A DNA stretch of 64,000 nt from IMGVR_UViG_3300029922_000001:248001-312000, one strand, 5' to 3'. Positions 5,911 through 51,565 are shown, counted from the first letter of the stretch. A program made the numbers and translations. Notes: a model not told the origin generated them from the letters alone.

Positions 5911-6463
5911 TGACTTCCTCTATATATGCTGGTGGCACATATTCTGTTAACCATACACCATTTTCAGAACGATAAAAAACAAATCTATTCAAATCCATTT
6001 GCTTTGAATCCACCTTCAATAGTGCATACTTTCCTCTTCTAGAACCAACATTAATTGCTGTTTCTATGTTTTCAGAAAGATGAACCGCATGACGATACAT
6101 CTTCTTAATTCCTTCCTCTAAAATCATTGGTACAGCATCATATGTTGTACCATGATAAAGAATGGCAGGAGGATTCAATGGAACTAACTGAAGATCAACT
6201 TCACAAGAATGACCTTGATTGGCTCTAATTCTTGCTCCTGATTCATCATAAGAATATCTTTGCTTATTATTTTCCGTCACTAACTGATCTAAATCAGCCT
6301 TTGTGATGTTAATATTAAACTTTTTCAAACCGTCTAATAGTTGTGTTACGAATACATAACCTCCAAGATCAAGCTTTTCAACTCCAATCTTTTGTGGCTC
6401 ATGTCGCAATATTAACGAAATAAACTTTCCTATTCTTTTAAATTCACGTTCATCCTTAATCAT
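5903..6463 (-). CDS. kptA: RNA 2'-phosphotransferase (Tpt1/KptA)
   Basis: ISLILRHEP, NNKQRY, RIRANQGHS, LYHGT, RHAVHLS, SENGVWLTEYVPP. Confidence 0.95.
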   Translation of the reverse strand: MIKDEREFKRIGKFISLILRHEPQKIGVEKLDLGGYVFVTQLLDGLKKFNINITKADLDQLVTENNKQRYSYDESGARIRANQGHSCEVDLQLVPLNPPAILYHGTTYDAVPMILEEGIKKMYRHAVHLSENIETAINVGSRRGKYALLKVDSKQMDLNRFVFYRSENGVWLTEYVPPAYIEEVND

Positions 6464-6485: not shown

Positions 6486-7016
6486 TTACTTTTTAGGTAA
6501 GAGCATTACTGTCATTTGTTTCCCTTGTAAGAGAATTTCCCTATCTACAGTTACAATATCATTTAGTTTTTCCAAACAATATTCCAACTTTTGCTTTCCA
6601 ATATGAGGGTGAGCGAGTTCTTTTGTTTTGAACTTGCAAACCAACTGCACTTTGTCATGCTTCCCAATAAATTCAACCGCTTTACGAATTGACGTATCCA
6701 AGTCATGTACAGCCGTATTAGGGCTAATACAAAGTGTTTTAAGTTCTTGAGGCTTTTTACGGTTGTCTTTTGCACGTTTTGCCTCTTCATACTTATATTT
6801 GCCATAGCTTACGATTTTGCAGATAGGTGGTTGTACCTTATCAGATACGCACAACAAATCTAAACCAGCATCATATGCTATTTGGATTGCATCCTTCGTG
6901 GGCATTACACCAATATTTTTGTTATTAGCGTCAATGACCGTTACTTCGGTAAATTGCTTAATGAGTCTTTCATTAAGGGGTGGGAATTCTCTGCGATTAC
7001 TTTTTTTCATCATCAT
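6486..7016 (-). CDS. infC: translation initiation factor IF-3
   Basis: LNERL...AGLDLLCVS...PPICKIVSYGKYKYEE...HDL...DKVQL...GKQMTVMLLP. Confidence 0.93.
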   Translation of the reverse strand: MMMKKSNRREFPPLNERLIKQFTEVTVIDANNKNIGVMPTKDAIQIAYDAGLDLLCVSDKVQPPICKIVSYGKYKYEEAKRAKDNRKKPQELKTLCISPNTAVHDLDTSIRKAVEFIGKHDKVQLVCKFKTKELAHPHIGKQKLEYCLEKLNDIVTVDREILLQGKQMTVMLLPKK

Positions 7017-7105
7017 AATAGATTGACCTATTATACCAGGGTATTCTTCTTCATTACAATCTTTCTCTATTCAATTTTCAATGTGCTTGAGTTTTAATTC
7101 TCGGT

Positions 7106-45573: not shown

Positions 45574-45927
45574 GGGCTCGTAAGGGAATCGACATGTTGC
45601 ATATATTGATGAACTTGAGTGAGAGATTACCCTTGGCTCTCTAAAAATGGGTAGAAAACATAAACGGCAAATCATATGCTTATGTAGGTTAATTCCTACC
45701 GCAAAAAATAAAGGTTAGTTGAGGACACTTTATTGAGCGTTGAAAAAATTCAACTACGCTATTAGGGTTGGTGGACCTTGGACCTGAAATAGTTAAATTA
45801 ATCAAGTATCCGGTTGCAGCGGTTTGATTTATACCAACATGCTTCCTATTAAATAAATCTACGCTCATAAAAAATAATTATTGGTATATCAGTAATGGAA
45901 ACGGCTTCGAGTGCCGTCGGGTCCACC
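45574..45927 (+). ncRNA. ssrA: tmRNA
   Basis: 5' GGGCTCG...ATCGAC; 3' ACGGC-TTCGAGT-GCCGT-CGGGTCC-A-CC with G3:U70; tag frame GGC AAA TCA TAT GCT TAT GTA GGT TAA at 45666-45692; TGGTATAAT promoter. Confidence 0.9.
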
Positions 45928-45934
45928 CGCGAAA

Positions 45935-48370: not shown

Positions 48371-48634
48371 ATGGAACGCAGGAAGATAGAAAAATGCCCA
48401 AGTTGTGATTCACCAAATATTGATCCTGGTGAGTATTGGTTTAAATACCACACTGATAGATATTTACTGTGTCATTCTTGTGGAGAAACATATGATAACG
48501 CCACTAGTGCTGAGCTAGATAGAGATATTGAACTGCGTAAACAGCGTTATCGGGAAATTGACGCTGCCCAAGAAGAAAAAGATTATCAATTGTATTTGAA
48601 ACTAAAAACTAGATTTAAGGGTAGAGATGTTTGA
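48371..48634 (+). CDS. small zinc-ribbon protein
   Basis: CPSC...CHSC; GTGGTATACT-6nt-ATG. Confidence 0.7.
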   Translation: MERRKIEKCPSCDSPNIDPGEYWFKYHTDRYLLCHSCGETYDNATSAELDRDIELRKQRYREIDAAQEEKDYQLYLKLKTRFKGRDV

Positions 48635-48926
48635 AAATATTAAAAAATGGTGGAGTCTTGAAATAAACAAAATTACATGTCCTCATGAATATGAAATTGA
48701 TTATTTCTATAGTAACGGAGTTTGCAGAGAACCTTATTATTGGTGTCCTGATTGTAAAAGGGGTATAGAACCTGAAGGTATTGAGTTTGCTCCTGGTGAA
48801 TGGCGTAATCGCACTCCAGATGATGACATCATTATTGTTCATTGGAATCCAGATGCGCCCATTTCTAAAGAATGTCTCAAAATGAGAGAAGAATTTGAAG
48901 CAACACAATATAAATGCAAGATATAA
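48627..48926 (+). CDS. small Cys-containing protein
   Basis: CPH...WCPDC. Confidence 0.65.
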   Translation: MFENIKKWWSLEINKITCPHEYEIDYFYSNGVCREPYYWCPDCKRGIEPEGIEFAPGEWRNRTPDDDIIIVHWNPDAPISKECLKMREEFEATQYKCKI

Positions 48927-48932
48927 TGAACT

Positions 48933-49202
48933 ATGGAAAAAATTCGATCAGAATATAAGATAGGTAAATTTAGTGATTTTGACAACGTTGTATTTGATTT
49001 GCAACTTGTTGAAATCGAAGGACCAGAAGGTAGTTCAAATAATGTAGTTCAAATAATGCCAAGAATTGATGGCGCTTTTCTTCAGAGAACTATTTTGTTT
49101 ATGCCAAGTCCAGAAGGTCTTCGTCGCTTAGGCAATGCATTTCTTGATTTAGCAAATGATGTAACAAATCTTGAGTCAGAGCAACTAAATTCGCAAAGTT
49201 AG
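48933..49202 (+). CDS. hypothetical protein
   Basis: ORF track. Confidence 0.65.
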   Translation: MEKIRSEYKIGKFSDFDNVVFDLQLVEIEGPEGSSNNVVQIMPRIDGAFLQRTILFMPSPEGLRRLGNAFLDLANDVTNLESEQLNSQS

Positions 49203-49217
49203 GGGTATAATACGAAT

Positions 49218-49310
49218 ATGAGACTATAGGTAACATCAAAAATATCGGTTTCCAGAGTAAGGAGGGCATTTAACATGTTGTAGAACATTATTAAATCACG
49301 TCCTCCTTAA
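49218..49310 (+). promoter_or_regulatory. leader ORF with two in-frame amber codons and RBS-sequestering hairpins
   Basis: GGGGTATAAT-7nt-ATG; M R L TAG V T S K I S V S R V R R A F N M L TAG N I I K S R P P TAA; hairpin 49312-49367 covers the next RBS. Confidence 0.65.
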
Positions 49311-49368
49311 ATTGTTTATTTCATTCGCAATTCGTCATTCTCGTGTGAATTCAAAGGAAATAAACAAA

Positions 49369-49758
49369 ATGGAACTATTAAAACAATTAAATAAAACTCA
49401 AACAGAACAATTTTTCATCAACACTAATTATAAAACTATGGTCGTTAATTGGAAACAGGCTTGTAAAGATGGCGTAGAATTAACCGTAGCTGATAATTTA
49501 TTATATACTATCATGAGAGGCAAAAGTTTGTTCAAAGCTTTTCGCCCATTATCTTCAACTAAAGCTTTATTAAGAGGTTGTGGTGAATATCAATCATACA
49601 CCAATGCTTATTATATGATTGTATATGGCAAATATAATAAGCATATTTTTGGTGATGTTAATATTAAGTCAATTCAAGCTTGTGTACCATCTGGTGGAGA
49701 TATTGATGATCAAAATGCTTTATATTATATTATAGGATGGAATAATGCATCAAAATAA
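49369..49758 (+). CDS. hypothetical protein coupled to the Pth2-like gene
   Basis: AAAGGA SD; NLLYTIMRGKS..KAFRP motif; overlaps the next gene. Confidence 0.75.
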   Translation: MELLKQLNKTQTEQFFINTNYKTMVVNWKQACKDGVELTVADNLLYTIMRGKSLFKAFRPLSSTKALLRGCGEYQSYTNAYYMIVYGKYNKHIFGDVNIKSIQACVPSGGDIDDQNALYYIIGWNNASK

Positions 49759-50068
49759 ACCACCTTATATTTACATATTTGTCCGGCAAGATATTCCTCT
49801 TGCCGATCAAATAGTCCAAACAGGTCATTCCTGTCAAGAATCAGGTGCAAAATTTGGATGTCCTGAAAATTGTCATTTGGTCTTACTAAGCTGTAAGAAT
49901 GAGCACGATCTTTTGTAGGTAGCTCAAAGATTAGAAATGAATCAAATTAAATTTATTAATTTTTTTGAGCCTGACGATCAAATGGGTTACACAGCTATTT
50001 GTACTGAACCATTAATAGATCGTCGTAATCTCTTTAGAAAATACAAACTCTGGAAATATGAGGTATAA
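49745..50068 (+). CDS. Pth2-like peptidyl-tRNA hydrolase with an in-frame TAG at codon 58 (readthrough or pseudogene; not in ORF track)
   Basis: YIYIFVRQDIPLADQIVQTGH...LVLLSCKNEHDLL*VAQRL...FFEPD..GYTAICTEP...FRKYKLW. Confidence 0.75.
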
Positions 50069-50075
50069 TTCAAAC

Positions 50076-50402
50076 ATGAAAAGAGAGTATAACTGGGAAT
50101 TAAAGGATGCTAGTCGTGGATATTGGGATGTAATTGCCACCGAACGTGGAAAATCTAATCCCAATCCCGAAAATCATTATGATCCAGGTTTCTATGAAAC
50201 CTATTGGGATGTCACAATTAAGACGCAATCTTATCAACCTAAATATGCTATTAGCTTCCAAGCTAAAAGTGATTACGATGAACCGTTGCGTATTTATCAA
50301 ATAGCGCACTATGTTCATGAACATATCATGTTGTTTTATGATGCTTGTATTCTAGAAAGTCATTCACCAACAACAAGAGTGATTTATAAGGACGTAGAAT
50401 AA
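50076..50402 (+). CDS. hypothetical protein
   Basis: GAGGTATAAT-6nt-ATG. Confidence 0.7.
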   Translation: MKREYNWELKDASRGYWDVIATERGKSNPNPENHYDPGFYETYWDVTIKTQSYQPKYAISFQAKSDYDEPLRIYQIAHYVHEHIMLFYDACILESHSPTTRVIYKDVE

Positions 50403-50405
50403 GAT

Positions 50406-50858
50406 ATGTCTGAACGTGAATTTACTCTTTTTATTACTGGACTAATTACAATAGTTATCACAATTATTGTAATTATTGGCATCATTCAAAACACCCCCAA
50501 ACGAAAAGAGGAAGAGGCAAAAAGGAAAGCATTTTTGGATGAATTTCTAAATAGCGAATATGTAAATGATAATTTCCCTGCACCATTATATATTTATCAA
50601 GTGAATCAAAGTGGTAGTAATATGATTTATCAAGCTGGTCATTGGGAGTTTATGGCTGAAGGTTATAGATACAATAATCATATGAATGAATTTTATACAG
50701 ATGGTCAAATTGTGCATTCTTTTCCTTATAACCTTGTGATTAATAGGTGTGGTGGACCATATCGAAATATGAGAGACTTTTATTTTGATCCCAAAGTTCA
50801 TAGATTTGTGACTCAAGAAAAAATGCTTAGTATGTATCAGAATAGTAAACAGGTATAA
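50406..50858 (+). CDS. N-terminally anchored membrane protein
   Basis: TM plus EFL.S...PLYI...GGPY; paralog of the next gene. Confidence 0.75.
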   Translation: MSEREFTLFITGLITIVITIIVIIGIIQNTPKRKEEEAKRKAFLDEFLNSEYVNDNFPAPLYIYQVNQSGSNMIYQAGHWEFMAEGYRYNNHMNEFYTDGQIVHSFPYNLVINRCGGPYRNMRDFYFDPKVHRFVTQEKMLSMYQNSKQV

Positions 50859-50865
50859 TAAGACT

Positions 50866-51315
50866 ATGACGGATGCTCAATTTGGAATTGAATTATGGAT
50901 TTGCGGTATTATTTGTGCGTTAGTGGTTATATCTGGTGTTTGTTCATTCATAAAAGATATAAAAAATGCTGTTGCTACTCAAAGATTAAAAGCGGAATTT
51001 TTATCTAGTGATTTCTTGCATAGAGAACTATCAAAGCCTCTTTATATTTTTCGTGTTCTGAATTCACAACGAAAAGACGCAAGCTACACTTATCTTTTAG
51101 CAAATAGTTATGAGGAAAATATAGCTGGTGGAATTAATTTTATTTTTGATGAACCCAATGATGAATATAGTACTTTGAGTTTCCCAAAGGGTTCAATTAT
51201 CTGTGAAAAAGGTGGACCATATAAAACAGCATATGAAGCTTGCGAAGACAAAACTATTACATTTTTAACTAAAGATTTATTGCTAGAAGCCTATAAAAAA
51301 CAGTATAAACCATAA
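50866..51315 (+). CDS. N-terminally anchored membrane protein (tandem paralog)
   Basis: Shares EFLSS...PLYIF...GGPY with 50406-50858. Confidence 0.75.
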   Translation: MTDAQFGIELWICGIICALVVISGVCSFIKDIKNAVATQRLKAEFLSSDFLHRELSKPLYIFRVLNSQRKDASYTYLLANSYEENIAGGINFIFDEPNDEYSTLSFPKGSIICEKGGPYKTAYEACEDKTITFLTKDLLLEAYKKQYKP

Positions 51316-51316
51316 A

Positions 51317-51565
51317 ATGGACACCGAAAAATTACCTATAAAATGGAGTGCTGTAATAATGTCTTATTACAATGCTTCAATGCAATATTATCAAAAACGG
51401 AAAGAACCTTATAACACGCTACCAACTCCAGAGCATAATTTTATTTGGATTTGGTATAGCGAACTCAATCGTTTGGATGGTCATTGTGGATGGTTAGAAG
51501 TGAATTTACATGCTGAAAAATATGGTAGATATTTTCTACAAAAGAGATATAACAACGCTAAGTGA
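51317..51565 (+). CDS. hypothetical protein
   Basis: ORF track. Confidence 0.55.
   Translation: MDTEKLPIKWSAVIMSYYNASMQYYQKRKEPYNTLPTPEHNFIWIWYSELNRLDGHCGWLEVNLHAEKYGRYFLQKRYNNAK

Follow-up and report, generated by a model that had tools for sequence, protein, structure and literature searches.

The window, that is the whole stretch of 64,000 nucleotides analysed here, corresponds to positions 248001-312000 in a virus record of 441,498 bp that comes from a peat metagenome and represents a jumbo phage whose genome is estimated to be complete. Coordinates in the whole record are marked G000; all others are window positions. The runs that contain this phage are DNA metagenomes only. Megablast of the region against GenBank phages gives zero matches, and a search of IMG/VR with a single protein gives zero relatives. 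The locus of interest is made up of the following features:

49218-49310, plus strand: upstream ORF of 31 codons ending in R-P-P-TAA, with in-frame ambers at 49227-49229 and 49281-49283
49258-49309, plus strand: predicted hairpin 1 (-19.6 kcal/mol, z -5.6, 0 of 200 shuffles as stable)
49259-49283, plus strand: SD AAGGAGG(G), 8-nt spacer and minigene ATG TTG TAG, read from the sequence
49312-49367, plus strand: predicted hairpin 2 (-14.4 kcal/mol, z -3.3, 1 of 200 shuffles as stable)
49369-49758, plus strand: gene A, 129 aa, function unknown, taken from the ORF list
49745-50068, plus strand: Pth2-like gene, 107 codons plus TAA, a single protein only if TAG-58 is decoded
49916-49918, plus strand: amber codon 58, next base G, in predicted helix 53-65 and at a variable alignment position

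An earlier note on this DNA had described the last gene as a Pth2-like peptidyl-tRNA hydrolase that carries one in-frame TAG and was missed by the ORF track. Translation of 49745-50068 confirms this layout, since 57 residues, the TAG at 49916-49918, 49 residues and a TAA follow one another in the same frame throughout, and the ORF list indeed breaks the gene into 49745-49918 and 49937-50068. The family-like motifs that had been seen in both halves are borne out as well. The alignment with phrog_34073 runs across the stop (residues 41-104, E 1.9e-12), and all invariant or near-invariant residues of the family are kept on both sides of it (Y10, R14, D16, Q22, Q25, H28; L56, E75, D77, T87). The search of the product against PHROGs matches only families without an assigned function. 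Using tblastn, single-domain homologues are found in 35 phage records, mostly of jumbo phages, and at least 80% of the read-through product is covered in 33 of the 35. Conversely, the family profile searched against the genome gives one match, with one TAG inside it (E 8.8e-47). No further stops, frameshifts or losses of conserved residues occur in the gene.

The amber codon does not come from a faulty assembly, as the earlier note had allowed, because the probable source contig (depth 17.9) shows zero differences from the window and one unitig of another sample (X3, 49811-49961) matches it exactly, including the TAG. Another unitig (X4, 49232-49906), which covers the SD and the minigene ATG TTG TAG, likewise has zero differences, and no variant letters are seen over 48500-51500 in four runs. 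TAG-58 is thus fixed in two samples or more, the runs dating from 2019 and 2020. As to homologues, the position of codon 58 is occupied by E, Q, K, D, R, N or F, and by N (L063), E (L064) and D (P0002) in the closest relatives, all of them from sense codons. A TAG at this position is not found in any relative examined, which makes it peculiar to the present phage. Of the two signs that the earlier note had named together as speaking against its reading, the intact codon in close relatives is found, but the decay around TAG-58 is not. In the rest of the family, the conserved stop lies elsewhere, at codons 2-6 of the gene or in an upstream ORF; the gene of the present phage starts with M-H-Q-N-K-P-P-Y and has CAA at the site of the relatives' TAG.

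For searches and folding, the TAG was read as Gln, purely as a placeholder. HMMER finds at least 1000 cluster representatives at E≤1e-3 in the full library, 294 of them at E≤1e-10. From this full-library search, 42 homologues were aligned with the product as the input to AF2, and the resulting model has a pLDDT of 95.9 and a pTM of 0.88. When the model is compared to the PDB by Foldseek, ranks 1-15 (E 7e-5 to 5e-3, TM 0.70-0.76) are Pth2 structures, except for rank 14 (2gax, a protein of unknown function); the Pth2 matches include AF2095, MJ0051, human Bit1, PH1539, TA0108 and the S. solfataricus enzyme. Among PDB sequences, the family profile A2 matches the peptidyl-tRNA hydrolase 24bt_A (E 5.2e-4) and AF2095 (E 0.44), the alignment being confined to the N-terminal two-thirds. 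By the Foldseek matches, the modelled product thus has the Pth2 fold.

Membership in the canonical family is another matter. At E≤10, Pfam returns zero families, whether the read-through product or one of its halves is searched, and the gathering score of PF01981 is not reached. The precomputed record of one relative (P0013) holds merely a 'faint' PTH2 match. Moreover, the phage has its own canonical enzyme:

G000 6600-7052 (L029 1501-1953), plus strand: canonical PTH2 (PF01981, E 6e-28), next to a tRNA cluster (His-Tyr-Pro-Tyr-Pro)

The phage therefore has two Pth2-fold genes, a canonical and a divergent one, and the amber is in the divergent one only. An hhalign comparison of the family to this canonical PTH2 is weak (probability 12.6%). 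Judged by sequence, the family is distinct from canonical PTH2. R14, D16, Q25, H28, E75, D77 and T87 are conserved in the family alignment, and the profile alignment has a two-residue gap at the 'GK' loop of canonical Pth2; since this loop is absent there, the substrate may not be peptidyl-tRNA. The product is a divergent Pth2-fold protein of a family widespread in phages, and probably an esterase with tRNA-linked substrates. The earlier identification as a Pth2-like hydrolase holds for the fold; a canonical member of PF01981 the product is not.

Upstream of the Pth2-like gene lies the sole sizeable gap of a long plus-strand operon, and the upstream ORF sits in this gap. It begins with ATG AGA CTA TAG (49218-49229), and the same frame reaches ATG TTG TAG at 49275-49283, which is the leader with a second TTG-TAG amber that had been noted before. 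After this second amber come N-I-I-K-S-R-P-P and a TAA at 49308-49310. The SD is predicted to be paired with CCUCCUU in hairpin 1, whose apical part contains both the ATG and the TAG. Predicted hairpin 2 begins 2 nt past the stop of the upstream ORF and would hide the SD of gene A, AAGGAA. Folding of the leader regions of relatives is not significant. Gene A and the Pth2-like gene share 14 nt, from the ATG of the latter to the stop of the former. Gene A has no match in Pfam, a word-based homologue search returns the gene A protein alone, and its AF2 model reaches a pLDDT of 40. Other than gene A, no conserved neighbours of the Pth2-like gene were found. The possibility that the leader is a decayed duplicate of the 5′ end of the gene was considered and rejected: a DNA alignment backs ATGTTGTAGAA and the SD alone.

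According to ARAGORN, the genome contains 24 tRNAs, two of which have the anticodon CTA:

G000 172128-172200: tRNA-CTA, outside the window (ARAGORN, Rfam)
G000 353602-353673: tRNA-CTA, outside the window (ARAGORN, Rfam)

Rfam scores both as tRNAs (66.7 and 54.6 bits). They lie 125 kb and 56 kb away from the Pth2-like gene and are not adjacent to it. The nearest neighbours of both are Lys tRNAs, with weak scores. The suppressor tRNAs are all 72-80 nt long, and since tRNAs of this size class are not expected to have Ser, Leu or Tyr identity, these three identities are disfavoured. No RF-1 domain or release-factor gene is found in the genome.

The phage otherwise uses the standard code. TAG is its rarest stop codon and terminates ~7% of long ORFs. 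ORF statistics are normal with the standard code, and reading TAG as sense gains less than reading TGA or TAA as sense. In-frame TAG junctions (7 of 77) equal the share of TAG among terminal stops and are not enriched. At the other six TAG junctions in the genome, no domain spans the stop, and a genome scan for SD-ATG-(1-4 codons)-TAG-ORF gives no convincing other amber-led gene. The Pth2-like gene is the only evident amber-containing gene of the genome.

Several other RNA genes and gene structures were recorded in this genome. A tmRNA lies at 49745's upstream side, at 45574-45928 on the plus strand and 3.8 kb from the Pth2-like gene (Rfam RF00023, 62.9 bits vs. a gathering score of 47; tag peptide GKSYAYVG by ARAGORN). 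The L133 tRNA cluster holds a tRNA-Gln(TTG) at G000 172713-172810, predicted to be 98 nt long with an anticodon-loop insertion of ~25 nt, possibly an intron, as well as a tRNA at G000 172212-172284 that is detected by Rfam and missed by ARAGORN. On the minus strand at G000 ~206,000-217,000, same-frame ORF junctions over TAA or TGA form a cluster; the coding scores to either side of these stops are high, and a downstream ATG is lacking. This may reflect an unusual gene structure or else an artefact of the crude codon score.

In order to see the gene in its family, homologues were collected from GenBank and, in addition, by scanning IMG/VR twice and JGI metagenomes once and by looking up several assemblies. 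All counts rest on the 47 homologues left after removal of near-duplicates, which fall into these classes:

TAG-led: 30 of 47 homologues, with tRNA-CTA for 27; the contigs of the other three are short or truncated
TGA-led: 2 of 47 homologues, with tRNA-TCA for both
Without gating stop: 14 of 47 homologues, with tRNA-CTA for 7
TAG separating an N-terminal domain from the Pth2-like one (L090): 1 of 47 homologues, with tRNA-CTA ~570 bp upstream

TAG-led genes have the form SD-ATG-(0-5 codons)-TAG, in frame with the body. Their tRNA-CTA is usually 0.03-4 kb off, and the suppressor tRNAs within the loci are all on the strand of the gene. Among the GenBank homologues, an SD, an ATG, one to four sense codons and a TAG precede the body in 10 of 12, the heads being M-T-amber in ME3, M-L-amber in Arash and RsoM2USA, M-T-H-amber in Serratia phage BF, M-A-Q-amber in CBB and GAP32, and M-S-amber in LR756501 (735 kb), which has a second, mid-gene TAG and two tRNA-CTA genes 2.2 kb away. 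All 10 of these TAG-led GenBank phages have a tRNA-CTA, usually 0.45-3.7 kb from the gene. The homologue in RaK2 starts with a plain ATG and has no TAG, and no tRNA-CTA was detected in that phage by a pattern scan; this is a soft result because the scan, which is insensitive on whole records, also missed the tRNA-CTA of ME3. The paper on RaK2 lists no suppressor tRNA (PMC3622015).

The two TGA-led genes, L075 (M-E-S-TGA) and L089, are preceded by a tRNA-TCA at 205 bp and 78 bp, respectively (72.8 and 60.4 bits by Rfam), and neither has a CTA tRNA. TAG-led genes are spread over the whole of a maximum-likelihood tree, in which the sister of either TGA-led gene is a TAG-led one, with supports of 97/92 and 97/80. 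This points to two independent switches of codon and anticodon together. A stop-led gene with only a non-matching suppressor is not seen among the 47 homologues. The base after the 30 gating TAGs is A in 24, G in 5, C in 1 and T in none, so that a purine follows in 29 of 30; the true terminators of the phage genome prefer T as the next base. In E. coli, a purine after UAG favours suppression. A suppressor is present for 29 of 32 stop-led vs. 7 of 14 stop-free genes (Fisher p 0.0046, a value that ignores shared ancestry), and the stronger arguments are the matching of codon and anticodon and the tight linkage. The gate is not obligatory, given the 14 members without a gating stop, 7 of which still have a tRNA-CTA; stop-free genes still beside a tRNA are those of L066, L069, L079, L126 and L138. 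The dependence on readthrough that the earlier note had proposed thus gains support from the two tRNA-CTA genes, from a TAG that is not reassigned genome-wide and from family stops that match adjacent suppressor tRNAs.

It should be noted that GenBank annotation often lacks the stop-led gene or shortens it, in some cases to an internal start, as in BF, Yen9-03, RsoM2USA, CBB, GAP32, Arash and others. Records with annotation errors are OQ632216 (Arash), KY630187 (BF), LT960552, MG752970, KU574722 and JN882285, and an Arash tRNA with the anticodon CTA is labelled as tRNA-Phe. An amber only 2-6 codons behind the start leads gene callers to skip or truncate a gene, and the target has probably been overlooked for this reason.

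The window gene belongs to a supported clade (97/91) with L135, L139, L136, L063 and L064. L063 (54% identity) starts with AAGGAG-N7-ATG TTG TAG and L064 (57% identity) with M-S-amber. In L135, the closest full-length relative, a tRNA-CTA is followed by GAGGA-N8-ATG TTG TAG ...R-P-P-P... TGA, and a gene A homologue (E 5e-9) without an SD then starts 7 nt past the stop of this upstream ORF and overlaps an amber-free Pth2-like gene. L139 has, in this order, a tRNA-like gene with CTA, an upstream ORF of 35 codons that contains two ambers and runs into the start of the next gene, a gene A homologue and the Pth2-like gene. L136 has the pair of gene A and Pth2-like gene. Gene A homologues therefore lie directly upstream of the Pth2-like gene, overlapping it, in L135, L136 and L139, and an amber-containing upstream ORF precedes gene A in the present phage and two relatives, L135 and L139. 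The link that the earlier note had drawn between the TTG-TAG context and the leader proves to be real, as ATG-TTG-TAG heads the gene itself in L063 and RsoM2USA (where it follows an SD in both) and the homologous upstream ORF in L135.

A number of loci are unusual in other ways. The tRNA of L139 (2415-2489; 50.1 bits by Rfam) has an apparent 8-nt anticodon loop (AUUCUAAA) that contains CUA; ARAGORN gave no anticodon for it, and nearly all gating TAGs have A as the next base. In L085, L091, L119, L121, L124 and L125, the Pth2-like frame enters the adjacent tRNA-CTA without a stop, and the C-terminal '..PVAQ..ERP.L..' of the L085 clade is the translated 5′ part of this tRNA. There, processing of the tRNA might yield a non-stop mRNA, which resembles the regulation of ArfA. 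L138 (1744-2349) and the P0004 contig have, 73-126 nt past the Pth2-like gene, a gene for a short release-factor-like protein with PCRF and RF-1; on the other side of the Pth2-like gene in L138, at a distance of 70 nt upstream, there is a tRNA-CTA. In Stenotrophomonas phage CM1 (L012 952-1800), the Pth2-like domain is the C-terminus of an open frame of 283 codons. In L090, a lone TAG (~5990-6000) divides the part homologous to the N-terminus in CM1 from the Pth2-like domain, and readthrough would give a fusion protein.

Amber codon 58 could be a recent nonsense mutation, as no relative has the same amber, and the gene would then be dying or would function in part through incidental suppression, with only the gate in the upstream ORF being programmed. 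A sense codon stands there in every relative examined, E, K and Q codons are one base change from TAG, and the suppressor tRNAs are not adjacent in the present genome. Yet the gene is otherwise intact, since further stops and frameshifts are absent and the conserved residues are all kept, and the TAG is fixed and non-polymorphic in runs of both 2019 and 2020. It is followed by a purine, as the gating ambers are and the terminators are not, LR756501 likewise has a mid-gene TAG besides its leader TAG, and the habit of one cognate stop is strong throughout the family. Weighing these points, we consider a recent mutation unlikely, if still a serious contender.

Two further explanations fit the data poorly. 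Had TAG been reassigned genome-wide, as in a code-15-like phage, the gene would be one of many recoded genes, and both the two tRNA-CTA genes and the rarity of TAG as a stop would follow; normal ORF statistics under the standard code, the smaller gain from TAG than from TGA or TAA as sense, a number of TAG junctions as expected from the terminal-stop share and the lack of any domain across TAG at the other junctions make this explanation exceedingly improbable. Very improbable, too, is that the locus yields a protein of 57 aa and another of 43 aa, which act apart or assemble, or that the TAG is an assembly or sequencing error. The ORF finder does give two ORFs, with the second starting from ATG 49937, but no SD precedes 49937, the two parts jointly form one compact Pth2 domain in the model, and independent assemblies concur on the TAG. 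What we favour, and regard as fairly probable, is that the divergent Pth2-fold gene is gated by stops that could be decoded only by the phage's cognate suppressor tRNA, and that in the present phage the gate is split between the upstream ORF and TAG-58. Our confidence is high for the stop/suppressor-tRNA pattern at the level of the family and moderate for TAG-58 being decoded and selected; it is low for the exact enzymatic role.

From this gated arrangement we infer a course of events that extends from the opening of the hairpins, themselves folding predictions, and the actual decoding of TAG-58 to the substrate and the feedback role. The two tRNA-CTA genes would supply the decoding of the ambers. 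Only with the ambers of the upstream ORF suppressed would a ribosome reach its R-P-P-TAA end. Termination is slow in a Pro-Pro-stop context, so the ribosome would rest on the 5′ arm of hairpin 2. With hairpin 2 melted, the SD of gene A would be freed, so that gene A and, coupled to it, the Pth2-like gene that it overlaps would be translated; the full Pth2-like protein would need a second suppression event at codon 58. If translation is gated by suppression in this manner, enzyme output would be roughly proportional to suppressor activity. The hydrolase would then most likely either clear tRNA-linked by-products of readthrough or limit the suppressor as a negative feedback. Bearing on this role are the retention of the gene near a tRNA even where it is stop-free, the PCRF/RF-1 neighbour in two relatives and the nearby tmRNA. 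More tentatively, and in our estimate rather doubtful, suppressor tRNA and Pth2-fold protein may form a self-contained circuit, conserved in many large phages, in which a hydrolase made only by way of its partner's stop acts on the suppressor or on readthrough products, sometimes with a release-factor-like neighbour, and so sets the level of readthrough.

If such a circuit exists, a buffered suppressor module could be a pre-adaptation for full stop-codon reassignment in phages. The conserved client gene would be the first conserved target for the long-unexplained suppressor tRNAs of phages. Since this client is linked to the tRNA, matched to it in codon and endowed with a tRNA-hydrolase fold, the question can be tested directly in cultured phages, whose hosts include Cronobacter, Pectobacterium, Serratia, Acinetobacter, Ralstonia and Salmonella. 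The module would also amount to a compact expression switch, provided by nature, that depends on suppression, and alternative genetic codes may have evolved by way of such an intermediate.

The components of this module have been met before in separate settings. PTH2 genes have already been noted in jumbo phages (PMC7824862), including ORF188 of RaK2 (PMC3622015). CUA suppressor tRNAs have been reported in standard-code jumbo phages, and the authors of the XacN1 paper, who read through 18 amber stops, state that a target of its CUA suppressors could not be found (PMC5852040); the papers on RsoM2USA and phiKp24 leave the role of the suppressor open (PMC8504454, PMC8386662). In the literature searched, there is no link of a Pth2-like gene to suppressor tRNAs and no report of the leader stop. 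The family resembles Pth2/PTRH2 (Bit1) in its alpha/beta fold (TM 0.70-0.76 to 3erj, 2zv3, 1q7s, 1wn2 and 1xty), in the N-terminal motif R-x-D...Q..H-A, which aligns with that of the solved proteins, and in its size of ~105 aa. It differs in lacking a Pfam PTH2 match, in the gap at the 'GK' loop and in the gating stops and adjacent suppressor tRNAs, which are seen in the divergent family only.

Regulation at short ORFs and early stops also has precedents. The minigenes of the lambda bar sites are free-standing and harm Pth-deficient hosts via drop-off; those described here are likewise SD-preceded ORFs of two to four codons (ATG-NNN-stop) and may be tied to the biology of peptidyl-tRNA hydrolase. 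Unlike the bar minigenes, they continue in frame into a Pth2-like body or are part of an upstream ORF, and their stop always matches a phage suppressor tRNA. Drop-off, which the earlier note had brought in as a functional reason for a readthrough-dependent Pth, is a conceivable rationale here. The gene for RF2, prfB, is autoregulated at an in-frame UGA by a +1 frameshift that senses RF2. There, too, the synthesis of a termination-related factor hinges on how an early in-frame stop is handled, so that expression responds to the capacity for termination or suppression, whereas decoding here would be by a cognate suppressor tRNA and feedback is a possible role. In SecM-secA, ermC and tnaC, a ribosome that translates a leader or stalls on it opens a hairpin that masks the SD of the next gene. 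The present locus is predicted to share the short upstream ORF, the SD-hiding hairpin downstream of it and, at the end of the ORF, a Pro-Pro-stop; the predicted signal is amber suppression, not a small molecule or secretion.

A parallel at the level of the code is found in recoded phages, in which a phage suppressor tRNA decodes in-frame TAG or TGA, the host keeps the standard code and a regulatory role has been proposed (10.1101/2021.08.26.457843; PMC6784885). Common to both are a phage-encoded suppressor tRNA and an in-frame stop in a phage gene. Recoding affects many genes genome-wide, whereas in the phages described here the code is standard and the stop is in one client gene or its upstream ORF, usually beside the tRNA. 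Suppressor decoding of stops is thus known already; what appears to be new, going by the literature searched, is a dedicated and linked tRNA-client module in phages that use the standard code.
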